NCBI GenBank assembly: GCA_946965045.2
Contig: OX459761.1
Span: 1 to 64,000, forward strand
DNA: 64,000 nucleotides
Direction: 5' to 3'
Source of the DNA: Epithemia pelagica
Taxonomy: Eukaryota; Protista; Bacillariophyta
Shown: piece by piece, positions 32,757-50,428 of the stretch
Position numbering within the stretch: position 1 is the first letter of the stretch
How the letters are laid out: every line of letters starts with the position of its first letter
Position numbers and translations under genes: made by a program
Notes under the pieces: generated by a model
What the model saw: only the letters and a program-made list of their open reading frames with translations
Database searches by the model: none
Told to the model about the DNA's origin: nothing

Positions 32757-35516
32757 ATGTTTGAAAAGTTTACTGAGGGTGCCATAAAAGTTATCATGTT
32801 ATCTCAGGAAGAGGCTCGTAGAATGGGTCATAATTTTGTAGGAACAGAACAACTTTTATTAGGAGTTATTGGACAACGACATGGAATTGGGGCTCGAGCA
32901 CTTAAAAAATTAAAAGTAACACTTAAAAAAGCTCGAAAAGAAATTGAATTGTATATTGGTCGTGGTACAGGTTTTGTAGCTTCCGAAATTCCTTTCACTC
33001 CAAGAGCAAAACGCGTTTTAGAAATGGCTGTCCATGAAAGTAAAGATTTAGGTCAAAATTTTGTAGGAACAGAGCATATTCTATTAGCACTTATTGCTGA
33101 ATCAGATGGTGTTGCTATGCGAACTTTAGATAAATTAAATGTCGATATTCATAAATTAAGAAATTTAATTTTAACTTATATTGAAGAAACGCAGGAAGAA
33201 ATTTTACGACCATTAACACAAGCTGAAAAATTCTTATTGGAACGTGAGAAAAAAGGTAGTCCAACTCCAACGTTAGATGAATATGCAGAGAATATTACCA
33301 AGGAAGCGATTGACGGAAATTTAGACCCAGTAATTGGGCGTGAGAAAGAAATTGATGATGTTATTGCTGTTTTAGCACGTCGAACAAAAAACAATCCTGT
33401 TTTAATTGGTGAACCTGGGGTTGGTAAAACAGCTGTTGCTGAAGGATTAGCCCAATTAATTTTAACAGAGAAAGTACCAGATTTCTTAGATGGTAGTTTA
33501 ATTATGGCTTTGGATCTTGGCTCAATTTTAGCTGGTACCAAATATCGAGGTGAATTTGAAGAAAGATTAAAACGAATTGTAGAAGAAGCTCAAAATGATT
33601 CTGCTGTAATTATTGTAATTGATGAGATTCATACGTTAGTTGGTGCTGGGGCTGCTGAAGGTGCAGTAGATGCAGCAAATATTTTAAAACCAGCTTTAGC
33701 TCGTGGAAAATTCAGATGTATTGGGGCCACAACTAATGATGAATATCGAAAATATATTGAACGGGATCCTGCGTTAGAAAGACGTTTTCAACCAGTGCAT
33801 GTTGAAGAACCTAGTGTAGGAACAACTATTGAAATTTTACGTGGATTACGTTCGAAATTTGAACAACATCATACTTTAAGTTATCATGATAAAGCATTGG
33901 AACAAGCTGCTATTCTTTCAGACAAATATGTAGCAGATCGATATTTACCAGATAAAGCAATTGATGTATTAGATGAAGCGGGAGCAAGAGTTCGTTTAGA
34001 AAATCGTCGTCTACCTTTAGGCTTAAGAAGTTTAATGCATGAATTGCAAGAAACAATTAAAGACAAAGAAGATTGTATTAAAGAACATGATTTTGAAGCG
34101 GCGAAACAATTATTAGATCATGAAATGGAAGTTCGAACGCATATTCGAATTATGAAACAATCTGCGTTAACAAATGAATCACGTGGGTTTAGCCGTCGTG
34201 ATGTTGACATGGTAACAGAAAACGATGTAGCAGATGTAGTTTCAAATTGGACTGGTATTCCTGTAACAAAAATTACTGGATCAGAATCAGCCCGCCTATT
34301 AAAAATGGAAGATACTCTTCACGAACGTATTATTGGCCAAAAGCATGCAGTGATAGCTGTTTCAAAAGCAATTCGCCGTGCTCGTGTAGGGTTACGAAAT
34401 CCAAATCGACCTATTGCAAGTTTCATCTTTGCTGGACCTACTGGTGTTGGAAAAACAGAATTAACAAAAACCTTATCAGATTATATGTTTGGCAGCGAAG
34501 ATAGCATGATTCGCTTAGATATGTCTGAATATATGGAAAAACATACGGTAGCAAAATTAATAGGTTCACCTCCAGGATATGTAGGTTACAATGAAGGTGG
34601 TCAATTAACAGAAGCCGTTCGATCAAAACCATATTCTGTTGTATTATTTGATGAAGTAGAAAAAGCTCATCCTGATGTTTTTAATTTATTGTTACAAATT
34701 TTAGACGATGGCCGTTTAACAGACTCAAAAGGACGAATTATTGATTTCACAAACACTTTAATTATTATGACAACTAATTTAGGTGCAAAAATTATTGAAC
34801 GTGAAAGTGGAATTAAACCTAAATCTGAGCAAGGCGAAGGAAGCTTTAAAATAACACCAGATGCTGTTATTGGATGGCAACCTGCTCCAGAGCCAATAAA
34901 AGATCCAGAAATTTTCCAACGTGTTACAAAATTAGTAAATGATGAATTAAAGAATTTCTTCCGTCCAGAGTTCTTAAATCGTATTGATGAAATTATTGTA
35001 TTTAATCATTTAACAAGAATTGATATTTGGGAAATTTGTGAGTTAATGATTAAACAAGTTCAAAATCGCTTAAAAGATAAAGGTATCAATTTAATTGTAG
35101 AATTATCTGTTCAAGCGTTTTTAACAGATGAAGGTTATGATCCAATTTATGGTGCTCGTCCATTACGTCGTGCAATTATGAAATACTTAGAAGATACACT
35201 TGCTGAACAATGTCTATCAAAAACTCTTTATCCGAATACAAAAATTTATGTTCGAAGAAAAAAAGTTGAAGGAACATTGATGACTTATACAAATGAGTTA
35301 GAGGTAGAAATTGATTTTAGTGATGTTGATCCTATGTTATTAAAAAATGCAACTGAAAACGATAAGGAACCTGTTGCAGCATTAGTTAGTTCAGATACAG
35401 AATCAAGTTCAGATCAAAACTTTGAATCATCTGGTAATAATGTAAATTTAGGTTTAGGAGCAGATAAACCAAAACCAAATAAAGTAGGAACAAATGAAAA
35501 GTTCTTTAAACGCTAA
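32757..35516 (+). CDS. clpC: Clp protease ATP-binding subunit
   Basis: Two AAA modules, GEPGVGKT and GPTGVGKT; [14 protein letters not shown]-terminus. Confidence 0.98.
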
Positions 35517-39616: not shown

Positions 39617-40234
39617 TTAACGACGTGAATAATATTCAATTACAAGTAATTCATCTAACTGTAAAGAAACATCAGATCTTTCACAATAATCTAAAACACG
39701 TGCTTCTAATTTAGAAGAATCTAATTTTAAATGATTAGGAATTTCAGTAACCTGATTGTTTTTAATATTATTCGCAATTAACGTATTAGAACTAGTTTTT
39801 TCTTTAATTCCAATCACATCATTCAAGCGACATTGAAAACTTGGTATGCTTACAACTCTTTTATTTACAGTGATATGACCATGATTTACTAATTGTCGAG
39901 CTTGAGCAATGCTCTTTGCAAAACCTAGAGTAAAACAAATAGTATCTAGTCTCATTTCTAATAACTGAAGCAAAATTAAACCAGTAACACCTTGTCGACG
40001 ACGTGCTTCTTTTACATATCTGAATAATTGGCTCTCAGTTAAACCATAATTAAATTTTAATTTTTGTTTTTCTTCTAATCGAACTCCATACTCAGTTAAT
40101 TTTTTCCCTGTTTCTGCATTCACATTTCCATCTTTTCCAGGTCGATTAAGCTTATTTGACTTTTTTGTTGTTAAGCCTGGTAAAAATCCTAATCGTCTGG
40201 TAATTCTTAATTTAGGACCTCTGTAACGTGACAT
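39617..40234 (-). CDS. rps4: 30S ribosomal protein S4
   Basis: [23 protein letters not shown]. Confidence 0.98.
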
Positions 40235-40298
40235 AAAAATATATTAAATATAATTGTTAATTTTTAAAACGCTTAATTTTGAAGAAATTTGAAACAAG

Positions 40299-40372
40299 GG
40301 CGAGTGACCGGACTTGAACCGGCGAATGGTGGAACCACAACCCACTGCCTTAACCACTTGGCTACACCCGCC
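40299..40372 (-). tRNA. trnH: tRNA-His(GUG)
   Basis: G(-1)GCGGGTG acceptor, TTGTGGT anticodon loop. Confidence 0.97.
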
Positions 40373-40389
40373 AAATTCTCTTTTGCTCG

Positions 40390-40419
40390 ATTGTATCAGA
40401 TAATACCGAGTTCCGTCTA
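40390..40419 (-). promoter_or_regulatory. Candidate trnH promoter
   Basis: Minus strand TAGACG, 18-bp spacer, TACAAT, ~18 nt before trnH. Confidence 0.45.
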
Positions 40420-40493
40420 TATTTTTATTGAAACAATCAAACATATTGATAAAATAGAATTAGACGGTGAAACAAAGATGGAAAAAAATAATT

Positions 40494-40507
40494 ACTAATA
40501 ATACATT
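40494..40507 (+). repeat. Left copy of 14-bp direct repeat (attL-like)
   Basis: ACTAATAATACATT, identical to 43516-43529. Confidence 0.9.
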
Positions 40508-40568
40508 TCAGAGTTTAATTGGGATTCCTCGTGTGACCTTTGAACGATCTCTTAAATTAAAATATTTA
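40494..40568 (+). pseudogene. 3' continuation of the split rep gene
   Basis: TNNTFQSLIGIPRVTFERSLKLKYL begins with the same TNNTF codons that end ORF339, in the same frame. Confidence 0.65.
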
Positions 40569-40984
40569 CCTATCAAGGTGGGACAAATCAGGAAGTTAAA
40601 TCAATTAATATATATAATGAAGAAGAAAATCGAATTGCAATCTTCAAACGATCTACAGGTGAATTTATGACATTTTGTGAGCCTAATGATGACGAACGAG
40701 AGGATCTACTAGAAACAGGAAACTTTGGAGGTCAATTTGGATGGTTCAGCGGTCAAGCGAAAAATGTTCCTCCAAAGGTTAAAGCAGAACAAAATGTTGC
40801 CGATGAAATTACGCCAATCGATAGCTTTGAGAGCCATGTGATGGGTATAACGCCTGCTCCTGCGTATGAATTTTCAAGCGTAGACGAAGGACAAAATCCA
40901 GGATTTACTCCACTGAATAGTTTCGATAGCGACGTTATGGGAATAACACCGTTAGATTCTTCATCATCGGACTATCAAATTTAA
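40568..40984 (+). pseudogene. Colicin D-like tRNase toxin, C-terminal half only, plus repeat tail
   Basis: TYQGGTNQEVKSINIYNEEENRIAIFKRSTGEFMTFCEPNDDEREDLLETGNF aligns by eye with the colicin D C-terminus (GTY...FN...VVIIKSNGEFLSGW...YLETGEL); includes the 105-aa ORF 40667-40984. Confidence 0.65.
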
Positions 40985-41004
40985 TTAACCTCAAGAAATA
41001 ATGT

Positions 41005-41472
41005 ATGATCAATATTAATTATAATCTAAAACGCCATATTGAATTATTAAAACAGGAAAAAAAAATTCTAAATGAAAAAAAATCTTTTTTGAAAGAAAAT
41101 CCAAAAGAAGCTTTAGAATTAATTAAATACGGCGCGAAAGTTAGTCAACATATTGTGTGGGAAGATCGATTTGAAATTGCTTCAATAATGGAAGACTTTT
41201 TGAGTAAAAAGATAAATGCGCATGAATTTCATGATAGTGTGTTTGGACTTCGTCGTAAGCATTCAGAGAAATGTAAAAGATTTCTATCAAAATTAGTTTC
41301 GGAAGAAATAAAAGATTTTTGTCCGAACAAAAATGCACATAAATTAAAAGGATTTTTATCGGCCTTGTATTTTGAATGCGAGCATTTTGAAACGAATTTC
41401 GATGAAGCCGAATTATATACTTCTATTGAAAATGGATTTTTTAAATTTCAAATAATTTTGAATGAAGAGTGA
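41005..41472 (+). CDS. Colicin D immunity (ImmD)-like protein, 155 aa
   Basis: FLSKKINAHEF...LRRK and LYFECEHFE match ImmD [11 protein letters not shown]...ERRR and LFMAAERFE; lies directly downstream of the toxin remnant. Confidence 0.65.
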   Translation: MININYNLKRHIELLKQEKKILNEKKSFLKENPKEALELIKYGAKVSQHIVWEDRFEIASIMEDFLSKKINAHEFHDSVFGLRRKHSEKCKRFLSKLVSEEIKDFCPNKNAHKLKGFLSALYFECEHFETNFDEAELYTSIENGFFKFQIILNEE

Positions 41473-41503
41473 TAAATTATATTACTCTTCATTCAAAATT
41501 ATT
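41451..41503. terminator. 20-bp inverted repeat at the end of ORF155
   Basis: AATAATTTTGAATGAAGAGT / ACTCTTCATTCAAAATTATT. Confidence 0.7.
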
Positions 41504-41785
41504 TTATTTTTATCTTAACCACTAAAACCCGACCATTTTAAGGCCAGAATTTCATTGAGGCATCAGAGCTTTAAAAGACCCTCTCAGAGCATATTTGAAA
41601 TTACTTCCTTGGCTTGATTTGATCCCCGATTAAACCCTTCAATATTTCCCACCAACATTGTTCATCTGGGGTAAACCCTAAATGAACCTCTATATTTTGT
41701 TTTTTATTTATTATTTTTAAACCCTTTACAAATAAATTTCTAAAATGCATACTTAATAAACAAATGTTAAAGAAGGAGTAAAAAG

Positions 41786-42430
41786 ATGTTTGAAGAAATT
41801 CCAAAAAATTGTAAATATGCGTATGCACGCGTAAGTTCGAAATCACAACAAGATAATTCTTCTTTGGAATTTCAGAAACAAGAGTTTCTGAAACTCGGGG
41901 TTCCTGAACAAAATATCCGAGTTGAAGTTGGATCTGCTGCGGATCCCATCAAGGATCGGCCAATTTTCTACAGTTTGATTGATAATGAATTAACTCAGAA
42001 TGACCTCTTATTTGTTACTAAAATTGATCGTTGCAGTAGAAATACACTTGAATTTTTAAAATTACAAGAACGTCTCCATAAAAAAGGTGTTACCTTTATT
42101 TCATTGGATTTACCATATTCCAATGATATGGCTGTTAATAAGTTAATCAGTACTAATCTAGCAGCTATTGCTACCTTTGAGAATGAAAGAAGAAAAGAAC
42201 GTCAACGTCAAGGAATTAAAGCAGCCAAAAAAGCTGGTAAATATTTAGGAAGAAAAACTGTTATTACTAAAAAACTAATTGCACAAGTTCAGGATCTAAA
42301 AGAAAATAAAAATTTATCCATTACCGAAATAGCTAAAATTACGGGTCGGGGTCGAAATACCATTTATAAAGTTTTAAAAGAGGAATTAAAATATATTCCT
42401 TACAATCGATTAGTTAAATCAGATAAATAA
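41786..42430 (+). CDS. serC: Serine recombinase, resolvase/invertase family (called serC in diatom plastomes; not phosphoserine aminotransferase)
   Basis: YARVS with catalytic S17, DRCSR, GKYLGRK, C-terminal HTH (SITEIAKITGRGRNTIYK); AGGAG SD. Confidence 0.95.
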   Translation: MFEEIPKNCKYAYARVSSKSQQDNSSLEFQKQEFLKLGVPEQNIRVEVGSAADPIKDRPIFYSLIDNELTQNDLLFVTKIDRCSRNTLEFLKLQERLHKKGVTFISLDLPYSNDMAVNKLISTNLAAIATFENERRKERQRQGIKAAKKAGKYLGRKTVITKKLIAQVQDLKENKNLSITEIAKITGRGRNTIYKVLKEELKYIPYNRLVKSDK

Positions 42431-42516
42431 ACTATAAAATGTTCTCTTATCGCCCTCTCAGGAGCTCAATAATCAATTTTAAATCATTTTACGTATAAAC
42501 CTACAGGAGGTAAAAA

Positions 42517-43536
42517 ATGGATCCAAAATCCTTAAATTTTCATTATCAAAATTTAGTTGTTGATTGGATATCTTTTAAGTTTCAAGATTCACAGTGTGAT
42601 CAAAATAAAATTGCAAATTATTTTTTTAATCTTGGATTTAACTCTTATCAACAATCTGGAAAATTATCAAGACCAATTCAAGAAAAGATTTTAGAGAAAT
42701 CTAAAAATCAATTTCAGATTTTTTTTCTTAACGATCATCCGTATTGGAAAGGTACGATTCTTCAATTATCAGGCTCAAATGCTAGTAGATTTTATTTTCT
42801 TGCAAAAAGAAACAAAATCGATTGGCAAATTCTTGAAAAAGCTACACTAAGTCGTTTTGATATAAATTACTGCCGAGAAAATAAAAGAGATAAAATCTCT
42901 TCATCTGATTTTATTGAAAATTGTTATACTAAATTAAAACGAACAAATTATAAAGTTCAGCTTGAGAAAAATAGAAAAGGTTCTATTCTAAGAATAGGAA
43001 ATCGAAAAGCTAATCATTACGGACGTATTTATCAACAAAACAATTCTTTAAAATTCGAGTATGAGATGAAAGGTAGATTTCTTCAGAAATTTCATAAATT
43101 ATTGGTTTCAAATAATTTTGAAGAAATCGAATCTAAGTTAACAAAACAATTTCTATTTTATTTTGGAAAATTATTACCTCTTCAACATTCTTATCTTGAT
43201 TGGTTGGTGCTGCAGTTACGTCCTATTCGAAAGCAAAAGACTTTTCAACTTGGTTTACAATCCGATTATATAAAATCTGAAAGCAGCATAAATTCAGAAA
43301 CTCTAATTCAATTTATCCAATTTTTGAATTATGCTCAAAATTTAGATTACACAATTCAAAATTTGGATGAAATTTCTTATAGAAAAGTTACTTTTATAAT
43401 TAGAGATTTTATAACCTATCAAAATCCTACAATTAGTTCCAAGAATCGTTATCAATTACAAAAAACAAAAGATTTTTTTCAACGTCTTCAAACTGGAGTA
43501 TTAATAACTTCATTCACTAATAATACATTCAAATGA
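42517..43536 (+). CDS. Plasmid replication initiator, Rep_trans-like, C-terminally truncated
   Basis: VDWISF, SRFD (R113/D115), IGNRK...RIY (Y172), KFEYEMKG; AGGAGG SD at 42505-42510. Confidence 0.7.
   Translation: MDPKSLNFHYQNLVVDWISFKFQDSQCDQNKIANYFFNLGFNSYQQSGKLSRPIQEKILEKSKNQFQIFFLNDHPYWKGTILQLSGSNASRFYFLAKRNKIDWQILEKATLSRFDINYCRENKRDKISSSDFIENCYTKLKRTNYKVQLEKNRKGSILRIGNRKANHYGRIYQQNNSLKFEYEMKGRFLQKFHKLLVSNNFEEIESKLTKQFLFYFGKLLPLQHSYLDWLVLQLRPIRKQKTFQLGLQSDYIKSESSINSETLIQFIQFLNYAQNLDYTIQNLDEISYRKVTFIIRDFITYQNPTISSKNRYQLQKTKDFFQRLQTGVLITSFTNNTFK
43516..43529 (+). repeat. Right copy of 14-bp direct repeat (attR-like)
   Basis: ACTAATAATACATT, ending 3 nt before the thiS ATG. Confidence 0.9.
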
Positions 43537-43736
43537 AATATTTTTATTTAAATGGGAAAACTTACAAAACACATTACCCTTTAACATTATTAAATTTACT
43601 AGTTTATTTCAACTATAATCAATCGTTACTTGTGTTAGAGTATAATAACCGAATTTGTAACAAAAAAAGTTGGGATAAAATTTTTATCCAAGATAGAGAT
43701 AAAATTGAAATTGTAACTATTGTTGGGGGTGGCTAA
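43533..43736 (+). CDS. thiS: Sulfur carrier protein ThiS (ycf40)
   Basis: Ubiquitin-like fold ending DKIEIVTIVGGG. Confidence 0.95.
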   Translation: MKYFYLNGKTYKTHYPLTLLNLLVYFNYNQSLLVLEYNNRICNKKSWDKIFIQDRDKIEIVTIVGGG

Positions 43737-43804
43737 AATTCAAAGAGAAACCAATCCTATTTATAATAGTCATATGAATATTAGAAATAGTAATTTTAGA
43801 GAAT

Positions 43805-48331: not shown

Positions 48332-50179
48332 CTAGAAATCATTTAAATCTGACATTGGATCTGAATTTGAATCATTATCATTTATTTGATTGGCAGTAAC
48401 TACCTCTTTCATGCTTAGTTTTAATTCTTCAACTTTAGATTTTAATAATTCAAAGTTATCATTTTGAGTCTCTTGTCGAATTGTTTCAATAAGTTTTGTA
48501 ATAGTTTGTTTTTTATCGTCTGAAATATTATCCTTGAATAACGATAATTCTTTCTCAGCTTCTAAACATAAGGCTTCTGCTTGATTTTTTAAATCAATAT
48601 TTTCTCGTTTTTCTTTATCTGCAGAAGCAAATTTTTCTGCTTCCGCTAACATTTCTTCAACTTCTTTTTCATTTAAATTAGAAGCACCTTGAATTGTTAC
48701 AGATTGTTCTACCCCAGTTTCTTTTTCTCGAGCTTTTACTGATAAGATTCCATCAACATCAATATCAAATGTAACTTCAATTTGTGGAGCACCTCTGTCT
48801 GCAGCTGGTATTCCATCTAATCGGAAATTCCCCAAACTTTTATTCCCAGTAACTAATTCACGTTCACCTTGTAATATATGAATTTCTACATTTGTTTGAT
48901 TATCAACCGCCGTTGAAAACATTTCAGATTTTTTAACAGGAATAGTGGTATTTCGAGCAATAATTTTTGTCATAACACCACCCAATGTTTCTACACCTAA
49001 AGATAAAGGAGTTACGTCTAATAATAAAACATCTTTAATTTCACCTGCTAAAATACCTGCTTGAATTGCTGCACCAATAGCAACCACTTCATCTGGGTTA
49101 ACAGATTGATTTGGTTTTTTATTTGTCAATGACTCCACTAATTTTTGAATAGCAGGAATTCTAGTAGAACCACCAACTAAAACAACTTCATTAATATCAG
49201 ATTTATCTAATCGTGCGTCATTTAATGCTTTTTCTACTGGAATACGGCAGCGATCAATTAAATCTTTGCATAAGTTTTCAAAAACGTCTCTTGTTAATTC
49301 TTGTTCAATATGTTTTGGTCCTGTTTGATCAGCTGTAATAAATGGTAATGAAATTATTGTTTTTTCAACTGTTGATAATTCAATTTTTGCTTTTTCTGCC
49401 GCTTCTGTTAAACGTTGTAATGCTTGAATATCTGTTGTTAAATCGATTCCTTCTTTTTCTTTAAAATCGTTCATTAACCATTTTACTAGAACATTATCAA
49501 AGTCATCACCACCTAAATTTGTATCACCTGCAGTAGATAAAACTTCAAAAATTCCATCACCAACTTCTAAAATAGAAACATCAAATGTTCCTCCCCCTAA
49601 ATCAAAAACTAAAATAGTTTCATTTTGTTTTTTGTCTAAGCCATAAGCTAATGATGCTGCTGTTGGTTCATTAATAATTCTTAGAACTTCAATGCCAGCA
49701 ATTTTACCAGCATCCATAGTTGCTTGTCTTTGAGAATCATTAAAATAAGCAGGTACTGTGATAACAGCTTGTGTTACCTCTTGACCTAAATAATCTGTTG
49801 CATCATTTATTAACTTTCGTAAAACTTGCGCAGAAATTTCTTCTGGACTAAAGTCTTTATTTAAAGCTGGGCATTTGATCTTAATATTATCATTTTGATC
49901 TTTGTCAACTTTATAAGGTAATTTTTTAGATTCATCCGAAATTTCTCCTTCTTTTGACCCGATGAATCGTTTAACAGAGAAAAATGTATTCTCAGGGTTA
50001 AGAACCGATTGACGTTTAGCAATTTGTCCTACTAACAATTCTTGTTTTTTAGTATATGCAACAATAGAAGGGGTTGTTCGTAAACCTTCAGCATTAATAA
50101 TTACACTAGGTTGTCCACCTTCAATTGCAGCTACTACAGAGTTTGTTGTTCCTAAATCAATTCCTACAACTTTTGCCAT
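48332..50179 (-). CDS. dnaK: Hsp70 chaperone
   Basis: [19 protein letters not shown]. Confidence 0.99.
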
Positions 50180-50428
50180 TTTAATTTAATTTTTTCTATA
50201 TTTTATATATTTAATTAAAGTTTAAATAATAATTGGAGAAATCTCTAACCTAATAATACGTAATTAAGTTTGAAGTATTAATAACATTGTTAATATTTCT
50301 TATGTAGACAAAATTTAGCAAATTTTTTAGACTAGTGAAAACAATCTACTAATATTAATTAGTTTATTTTCTACTCAAAAATAAAAAAAAGTAGCGTTAC
50401 TATTAAAAAAAAAGTTTGGAGAACTGTT

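Follow-up and report, generated by a model that had tools for sequence, protein, structure and literature searches.

The stretch of DNA analyzed here (the window) comprises 64,000 nucleotides of Epithemia pelagica (contig OX459761.1, positions 1 to 64,000, forward strand). The subject of this report is an open reading frame (ORF) at 42517–43536, referred to as rep, and the plasmid-derived segment in which it lies. The presence of tRNA-His and thiS, with rps4 among the further neighbors, beside a serine recombinase gene (serC) and rep identifies the window as a chloroplast genome carrying plasmid-type genes. A first-pass annotation had described rep as a large, C-terminally truncated plasmid ORF with a strong AGGAGG Shine-Dalgarno sequence, encoding a Rep_trans-like initiator. 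Both the ORF and the AGGAGG are present as described. The results below support a Rep_trans-like identity for the first ~235 residues of the protein. The features of the locus are as follows.

40298..40371, - strand: tRNA-His, the chloroplast gene to the left of the insertion (ARAGORN)
40494..40507, no strand: left copy of the 14-bp repeat ACTAATAATACATT, the left junction (repeat comparison and contig joints)
40508..40568, + strand: detached continuation of rep (QSLIGIPRVTFERSLKLKYL), its frame continuing exactly as in the metagenome plasmid contig L001
40569..41503, + strand: two plasmid cargo ORFs, of 105 and 155 amino acids (ORF list)
41786..42430, + strand: serC, serine recombinase with Resolvase and HTH_7 domains (Pfam Resolvase E 1.9e-27)
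42505..42510, + strand: AGGAGG ribosome-binding site, 6 bases 5' of the rep ATG (direct reading)
42517..43536, + strand: truncated rep ORF, 339 amino acids, ATG start
42517..43221, + strand: Rep_trans-like (TBP-fold) catalytic domain, residues 1–235 (AlphaFold, Foldseek, structural alignment, ESM Atlas)
43288..43506, + strand: first winged-helix domain, residues 258–330 (secondary structure of the model; the winged-helix matches cover 258–330)
43516..43529, no strand: right copy of ACTAATAATACATT, the right junction, within rep codons 334–338
43533..43736, + strand: thiS, the chloroplast gene to the right of the insertion (Pfam ThiS E 2.4e-9)

The rep ORF corresponds to residues 1–338 of a plasmid initiator of ~480 residues. 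The frame leaves the plasmid sequence inside the right copy of the 14-bp repeat, and Lys339 and the TGA stop codon belong to the chloroplast flank. With relatives of ~480 residues and an exit from the plasmid within the repeat, the truncation noted earlier is real. The serC gene ends 86 bases upstream of rep, and the ATG of thiS overlaps the rep stop codon (ATGA, 43533–43536).

The origin of this arrangement can be seen from public contigs, which were compared over positions 40200–43800 of the window. A joint from 43515 to 40494, with 14 shared letters, is found in runs X3 and X10. In run X3 (organism B), a 4,538-nt contig spans 40568–43515 with 2 differences in 2,948 bases. Because this contig runs from 43515 back to 40494 through the 14 shared letters, it represents the free circular plasmid with an intact rep. 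A second contig of the same run (682 nt), ~11-fold deeper, joins 40381 to 43529 and represents the empty chloroplast site. These joints indicate that a circular plasmid of ~4.5 kb entered the chloroplast DNA by recombination, at a site flanked by tRNA-His and thiS, by way of 14 bp of identity inside its own rep. The identity between window and plasmid ends at 40568/40569, with unmatched sequence on both sides of 40568 in the contig from run X3. The window copy lacks ~1.5 kb, comprising the rep codons from ~358, the conserved motif and repeats that follow rep in its relatives (see below), and part of the cargo. The 64-kb window contains no further rep fragment.

The contigs of organism B also differ in word depth (78.9 for the free plasmid and 858 for the chloroplast contig, a ratio of ~1/11). 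By these depths, which are crude, the plasmid does not look like a high-copy one. A fixed attachment site inside rep was considered but found no support, as truncated chloroplast copies end at scattered profile positions (244–410), many of which are contig ends. The metagenome contig L001 carries the identical AGGAGG site. A comparison of L001:1–520 with window positions 41990–42430 and the N-terminal part of rep gives 99.7% identity for rep and ~85%, by eye, for the part of serC. Since its serC is clearly more divergent than its rep, these plasmids appear to be mosaics that exchange modules.

Diatom plasmids have been known since 1991. To our knowledge, their large ORF still goes by the name of a hypothetical protein. 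Homology places rep in the family of this large ORF (pCf1 ORF482 and pCf2 ORF484, ~480 residues at full length). A word-based search finds 284 relatives, with E values down to 2e-193, most of them with 478–490 residues and without Pfam annotation. The aligned relatives are 48–98% identical to the window protein, the closest being P0001 (98%). The homology to the diatom plasmid ORF spans the whole retained length of rep and is accompanied by the adjacency of serC, a pairing that persists down to 40% identity (L080 and L083, with Pfam-confirmed recombinases), which confirms the earlier description of rep as a large plasmid ORF. An exhaustive profile search returned 1,392 clusters (50% identity level), of which 287 have E ≤1e-30. 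The best 150 of the 1,392 all belong to the same family, with no bridging bacterial relatives among them. In the ESM Atlas, the cluster nearest by fold carries the name of pCF1 ORF482 of C. fusiformis.

Members of this family have been reported before. A study of dinotom plastids described pCf2 ORF484, pCf1 ORF482 and fragments of such genes in chloroplast genomes, with no function assigned (PMC2873285), and orf480, orf513 and orf515 of the Haslea silbo plasmids are given as hypothetical (PMC8070900). The window ORF resembles those of Cylindrotheca fusiformis and H. silbo in its family, in its pairing with serC, and in the insertion of fragments into chloroplast genomes; unlike the full ORFs, it is a fragment of 339 residues. 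Our literature search found nothing relevant linking Rep_trans or rolling-circle replication with diatom plasmids. The family is thus old and, in the literature searched, functionally unannotated.

The structure of the window protein was modeled with AlphaFold from an alignment of 28 sequences. The mean predicted local distance difference test (pLDDT) score is 78, with values of ~85–97 over residues 10–220. A Foldseek search of the PDB with this model ranks RepDE (4cwc, 4cwe) or RepSTK1 (4cij) in the six best positions (E ~1e-6, probability 1.00), followed by TBP, in agreement with the TBP-like fold that has been described for Rep_trans (PMC13107129). In an exhaustive structural alignment to 48,161 representative chains, 4cij_A is the sole chain with Z ≥8 (Z 10.6 over 202 residues, model residues 10–236 aligning on residues 3–257), and RepDE is second with a Z score of 6.9. 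A separate run of VIA-align against 4cij gives Z 10.7. The same region was also examined in a full-length relative, P0002 (79% identical to the window protein, pLDDT 81.7), the model of which matches RepSTK1 over residues 10–234 with Z 10.5. In the ESM Atlas, the features of residues 1–240 lead to Rep_trans, Rol_Rep_N, RepD-like_N and Phage_CRI clusters at 0.95, and Rep_trans clusters are found by features and by fold. Together with the catalytic residues, which are in register (see below), these matches bear out the Rep_trans-like assignment of the first-pass annotation, which had made it depend on structural similarity to Rep_trans and on conservation of Tyr172, Arg113 and Asp115.

Sequence comparisons below the curated thresholds all point in the same direction, to Rep_trans and its kin. 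The Pfam Rep_trans family PF02486 has a gathering score of 29.6 bits; the window protein has no match to it, and its best relatives reach 23.4 and 21.5 bits, under that score. PF02486 is nevertheless the commonest weak match, in 11 of 28 relatives (best E 0.0038), and divergent members give Rep_trans at E 5e-5 and 2e-4, Rol_Rep_N at 0.0035 and Phage_CRI at 0.07. A hidden Markov model of the family (159 members) matches RepC of pT181 with p ~4e-6 in hmmsearch, and hhalign aligns the 159-member profile with RepC over 242 columns (probability 78.5%, E 1.7e-5). The RepC side of this profile comparison is shallow because the word search with RepC gave just near-identical staphylococcal proteins (at least 86% identity).

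The four sequence strings singled out in the first-pass annotation are all present under the residue numbers then used. They are VVDWISF at residues 14–20 (containing D16), SRFD at 112–115 (R113 and D115), LRIGNRKANHYGRIYQ at 158–173 (G161, R163, R170 and Y172) and KFEYEMKG at 179–186 (E181, E183 and K185). Their relation to the known enzymes is as follows.

42562..42564, + strand: codon of D16, counterpart of the RepDE metal ligand D46, motif N' (hhalign; Asp in 145 of 152 relatives)
42853..42861, + strand: R113-F-D115, the RxD of motif I, with D115 the counterpart of metal ligand D142 (hhalign and hmmsearch)
43024..43032, + strand: R170-I-Y172, with Y172 corresponding to the nucleophile Tyr191 of RepC/RepD and R170 to R189 (alignments)
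43051..43071, + strand: K179-F-E181-Y-E183-M-K185, corresponding to R212-V-E214-I-E216-L-K218 of RepC (hhalign)

In RepC and RepD, Y191 acts as the nucleophile, the metal is bound by D46, D142 and E214, and religation requires R189 and K193; R140, A144, D146, R212, G180, T176 and Y178 are also conserved (PMC4797284). The sequence of pT181 RepC was rebuilt across the start of its record, with the RIY tyrosine at position 191. The hhalign alignment pairs (window/RepC) D16/D46, R113/R140, D115/D142, G161/G180, R170/R189, Y172/Y191, K179/R212, E181/E214, E183/E216 and K185/K218, which makes E181 the counterpart of metal ligand E214. The D16/D46 pair sits in a low-confidence stretch of this alignment, and the central motif block aligns even with a single RepC sequence. 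In the model, Y172 is located on a strand formed by residues 167–174. The alignments support a putative D-D-E metal site (D16, D115 and E181) in residues 1–235, with Tyr172 as the putative nucleophile and Arg170 in the same RIY motif.

Conservation was counted in 159 full-length relatives, down to 26% identity in the catalytic domain. Tyr172 is found in 158 of 158, and is the only tyrosine of the catalytic domain kept in all relatives. Arg113, Asp115 and Glu183 are each present in 158 of 159, Glu181 in 157 and Arg170 in 156, and Asp16 in 145 of 152. The motifs are thus not due to chance, being conserved in 145–158 of the 159 relatives at such distances, and the residues whose conservation the first-pass annotation had asked about (Y172, R113 and D115) are among the most constant ones.

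The C-terminal half was studied in the model of P0002. Residues 247–482 match dozens of RepE54/RepE entries, domains 2–3 of RctB, and a Rep-iteron complex, with Z scores of 7–8.2 over 166–194 residues, a root-mean-square deviation (rmsd) of ~6 Å, and essentially full coverage of the targets. The ESM Atlas features of residues 245–482 lead to Rep3_N, IncQ RepC, RepA_C, TrfA and RPA clusters at 0.89–0.91. No Rep_3, TrfA or RepC match came up when family members and neighbors (28 + 10 + 9) were scanned with Pfam. The winged-helix scores are borderline singly, yet they agree with one another and with the 22-bp repeat DNA described below. As modeled, the full-length protein resembles a fusion of two modules, a Rep_trans-like domain (residues 1–235) and two winged helices (residues ~247–482). 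The first winged helix is the only part of this RepE-like DNA-binding half that is retained in the window copy.

The DNA downstream of rep in the relatives is origin-like. Of the 64 related loci that extend far enough past rep, 37 have direct repeats with a period of exactly 22 nt, and other periods from 16 to 29 occur in 0–2 loci each. The arrays are located 20–310 nt past the rep stop codon and nowhere else in the loci, save for an extra or differently placed array in L022, L056 and the start of the L080 contig. Each consists of two to six direct copies after one inverted copy, 3–9 nt apart. The repeats share a core of approximately GGA-N3-TTTT, with a variable outer part, and a conserved motif, TATGGGGTWAGAC, lies between the rep stop codon and the repeats in ~25 loci. 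The predicted RepE/RctB-like second half and these repeats just after rep are new beyond the first-pass annotation. The hairpin loop was tried as a candidate nick site and dropped, as the loops (3–9 nt) have unrelated sequences.

Twelve contigs with terminal overlaps represent circles of 2.6–4.9 kb. The smallest, L082 (2,649 bp), holds just a 208-residue ORF in the serC position, a 482-residue rep and the repeats. The 208-residue ORF is assigned by position, and a Resolvase-type recombinase is confirmed by Pfam in the ~40%-identity relatives L080 and L083. Because the smallest circles hold just rep, a recombinase (or an ORF of its size) and repeats, rep is, by elimination on gene content, the replication initiator. 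This bears on another function known for the enzyme family. Some Rep_trans enzymes serve as relaxases in integrative and conjugative elements (PMC5714925; PMC6499999), and the protein could be a MOBT-type relaxase (as in ICESt3 and Tn916) that serves transfer or mobilization, moving the plasmid between compartments or cells, and not a vegetative initiator. The occurrence of the family in many diatoms and several chloroplast genomes implies that the plasmids do move. However, a relaxase would leave the smallest circles with no initiator, as rep is their sole candidate. No transfer genes are found in any locus, the loci holding just recombinase, rep and cargo, and the N-terminal HTH_3 domain of the Rep_trans clusters in the ESM Atlas is absent, with no helix-turn-helix before the catalytic domain. 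Moreover, we know of no conjugation apparatus in plastids. We consider a relaxase very improbable.

We propose instead that the full-length protein is a chimeric initiator, which combines a Rep_trans nicking domain with a RepE-like iteron reader and acts at an origin made up of the conserved motif and the inverted and direct 22-bp repeats. We would put the chances of this specific arrangement at about even. The winged-helix half would bind the 22-bp repeats downstream of rep, and this binding would place the Rep_trans domain on nearby DNA. Tyr172 would cut one strand and stay joined to its 5' end, and chloroplast enzymes would carry on synthesis from the 3' end, so that diatom plasmids would replicate by a rolling circle. 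The reading as a whole, in which an initiator fragment was left in the window by integration of a plasmid, the intact protein has two modules and works by this mechanism, and the window copy is a relic, has in our judgment a probability of about 0.78.

Several observations weigh against this reading. No Pfam, NCBIfam, PHROG or PDB-sequence match at the curated threshold was found for the window ORF or its family. The sequence search of the PDB gave zero matches even at E 10, with the single protein and the 28-sequence profile alike, and seven family members had no match in PHROGs. The hhalign probability is moderate, and the winged-helix match (Z ~8, rmsd above 6 Å) is borderline by the aligner's own guidance. 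The motifs deviate as well. Of the five Rep_trans motifs as defined by Wawrzyniak et al. (PMC5714925), N' and I are present, and IV is present at its Glu, with Lys179 for the Arg (Lys or Arg in 147 of 159 relatives). Motif II (T/SxY/ExG) is represented just by Gly161 of I157-L-R-I-G161, and motif III (YxKxxE) just by Tyr172 of Y172-Q-Q-N-N-S, position 177 being mostly Ser among the relatives. The religation residue K193 has no counterpart in the window lineage (Q174) and is Lys in 41 of 159 relatives, and A144 and D146 of RepC have no conserved counterpart. Because motifs N' and I are present, IV is present in part, and II and III are seen just at Gly161 and Tyr172, we file the window protein as a divergent branch of the Rep_trans superfamily, not as a member of the Pfam family. 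The motif list put forward in the first-pass annotation corresponds just in part to the canonical set; its R-x-D, RIY and KxExExK hold in register, and of motifs II and III just Gly161 and Tyr172 fit.

The DNA downstream of rep adds to these difficulties. From one inverted repeat to the next, the loops differ both in length and in sequence, which is not what a conserved nick site would show, and 22-bp iterons with a RepE-like module are typical of theta, not rolling-circle, replication. The plasmids could accordingly be iteron-driven theta replicons (like F, pPS10 and Vibrio chromosome 2), with the Rep_trans-like domain used for DNA binding, origin bending or copy control. The resemblance of residues 247–482 to RepE, RctB and the Rep-iteron complex, the ESM Atlas features pointing to Rep3_N, TrfA and RepC clusters, and the exact 22-bp periodicity, with two to six direct repeats and one inverted as in iteron plasmids, would all be expected from such a replicon. 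It would leave the N-terminal domain hard to explain, as the Tyr, the three acidic ligands and the Arg are near-invariant in the 159 relatives, which argues against a re-purposed domain without catalysis. Rolling-circle initiators with repeated sites beside the nick are also known (pMV158 RepB, geminivirus Rep and f1 gpII). We regard theta replication as unlikely.

The chimeric initiator can be compared with three groups of known systems. The closest Rep_trans systems are RepSTK1 of pSTK1 (4cij) and RepC, RepD and RepDE of the pT181 family (4cwc, 4cwe), which correspond to PF02486 with PF18106. The diatom protein shares with RepSTK1 and RepDE the TBP-like fold (Z 10.6, 202 residues), the order of the motifs and the arginine of RxD. 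As in RepC and RepD, its putative nucleophilic Tyr is on a β-strand, in R-I-Y. As in RepDE, the three putative carboxylate ligands would be on three separate strands, judging from the secondary structure of the model. It differs from these systems in that its sequence identity is 12–17%, with a match below the Pfam threshold, and in having degenerate motifs II and III, with no Lys at Tyr+2 in the window lineage. Its DNA-binding part is a module of ~235 residues with two winged helices, where RepD has a helical domain and RepSTK1 has loops. The host also differs, a eukaryotic organelle for the diatom family and bacteria for Rep_trans as described (PMC13107129).

The second group is the iteron initiators, RepE of F (RepE54 entries, 2z9o), RctB domains 2–3 (5tbf, 5ubf) and a Rep-iteron complex (8aan). 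The C-terminal half of the full-length relatives aligns over the whole chains of RepE and RctB, and the relatives have, like iteron plasmids, 22-bp direct repeats and one inverted copy beside the gene, which are absent from the window. In contrast to RepE and RctB, they show no sequence-level match to Rep_3, TrfA or RepC and carry a fused, putative nicking domain, which RepE and RctB lack. The window copy has just the first winged helix and no repeats. The third is Rep-Arvir (RepSNJ2) of archaeal pleolipoviruses and plasmids, which is similar in having a Rep_trans-like domain recognized mainly by structure, followed by a winged-helix DNA-binding region and one more C-terminal domain, and in depending on a DNA element that lies directly 3' of its gene (PMC13107129). 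Rep-Arvir differs in its DUF7845 lineage, the KHYYM sequence around the Tyr, its archaeal hosts, and a hairpin cis element in place of a 22-bp array. By its sub-threshold Pfam matches and RIY context, the diatom family is nearer to the bacterial Rep_trans enzymes than to Rep-Arvir.

The copy of rep in the window is a separate question from the function of the intact protein. The first-pass annotation had suggested that the truncated product might keep the ability to nick plastid DNA. In favor of this, the copy has a full catalytic domain with every conserved residue and a strong ribosome-binding site 5' of it; the ORF continues into thiS, with which it is probably co-transcribed, and RepC can cut single-stranded DNA bearing its nick sequence. 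The state of the element, however, makes an active nuclease doubtful. The protein stops short of the second winged helix, and in pT181-type Reps it is the C-terminal part that determines origin specificity, with neither fragment being stable by itself (PMC4797284). The integrated element retains neither the iterons and their inverted repeat nor the conserved post-rep motif, and the motif has no match in the 64-kb window. The cognate 17-nt repeat of L001 gives in the window just three matches, each with 3 mismatches (0.2 expected by chance), all of them outside the element, so that neither the element nor the rest of the window holds the cognate repeats or motif. Moreover, the intact catalytic residues are explained by the 99.9% identity to the free plasmid (2 differences in 2,948 bases). 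Given this identity, they would reflect the youth of the copy and carry no information on selection. The contigs assembled from metatranscriptomes hardly reach into rep and give no indication of expression either way. Because the second winged helix is lost along with the whole of the origin-like DNA, the window copy is most probably a relic of very recent date and without function, and we think it quite unlikely that it nicks chloroplast DNA.

Rep_trans enzymes were described in a 2026 paper as confined to bacteria, with distant archaeal kin (PMC13107129). The assignment of the diatom protein to these nicking enzymes extends the enzyme family to a eukaryotic organelle, and gives a first concrete idea of how diatom plasmids replicate. 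If the proposed chimeric initiator is correct, these plasmids would be the first replicon of Rep_trans lineage in a eukaryotic organelle and a mechanistic hybrid of rolling-circle and iteron plasmids. The named catalytic residues and the candidate origin beside the gene make the mechanism directly testable. The family is large, with ~1,400 clusters at 50% identity in environmental data. The minimal replicon of ~2.6 kb, made up of rep, the repeats and an ORF the size of a recombinase, could provide a chassis for vectors that replicate themselves in diatom chloroplasts, and a very recent insertion with a surviving free-plasmid counterpart is useful for studying the entry of foreign DNA into plastid genomes.

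Other features were noted around the integrated element. The two cargo ORFs (105 and 155 residues) have no Pfam match. An inverted repeat at 41442–41512, with 33-nt arms (88% complementary) and a 5-nt loop, overlaps the last ~30 nt of the 155-residue cargo ORF and is followed by no 22-bp repeats; it may be a stem-loop at the end of a transcript. The insertion, ~3 kb in length, now splits thiS from its former upstream DNA, and for this reason the expression of thiS probably depends on transcription through rep. The matches to the 17-nt repeat of L001 are located at 33848–33864, 49932–49948 and 50235–50251.

The wider family shows additional variation. Many diatoms carry it, and several chloroplast genomes contain it as an insertion. 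In L003 and L007, a full-length or near-full rep lies inside chloroplast gene contexts of other organisms (rpl20/rpl35 and psaF/rpl27, respectively), and L003 has a perfect 21-nt hairpin (L003:5213–5261) 5' of a tyrosine recombinase gene. The relative P0023 is labeled by its source as the raphidophyte Fibrocapsa japonica, and the family may for this reason reach beyond diatoms. Some members are filed under bacterial bins (metagenome-assembled genomes of Ignavibacteriota and Bacteroidota) and are probably diatom organelle or plasmid DNA that was mis-binned. A 6.9-kb contig (L004:113–5348) has two rep paralogues, of 484 and 520 residues, around one resolvase gene, and is possibly a cointegrate of two plasmids; its 520-residue paralogue has a weak Rep_trans match (E 0.006). 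Finally, a 4.4-kb circular plasmid of the family carries a pentapeptide-repeat protein as cargo (L005:3189–3689, Pfam E 1e-15).

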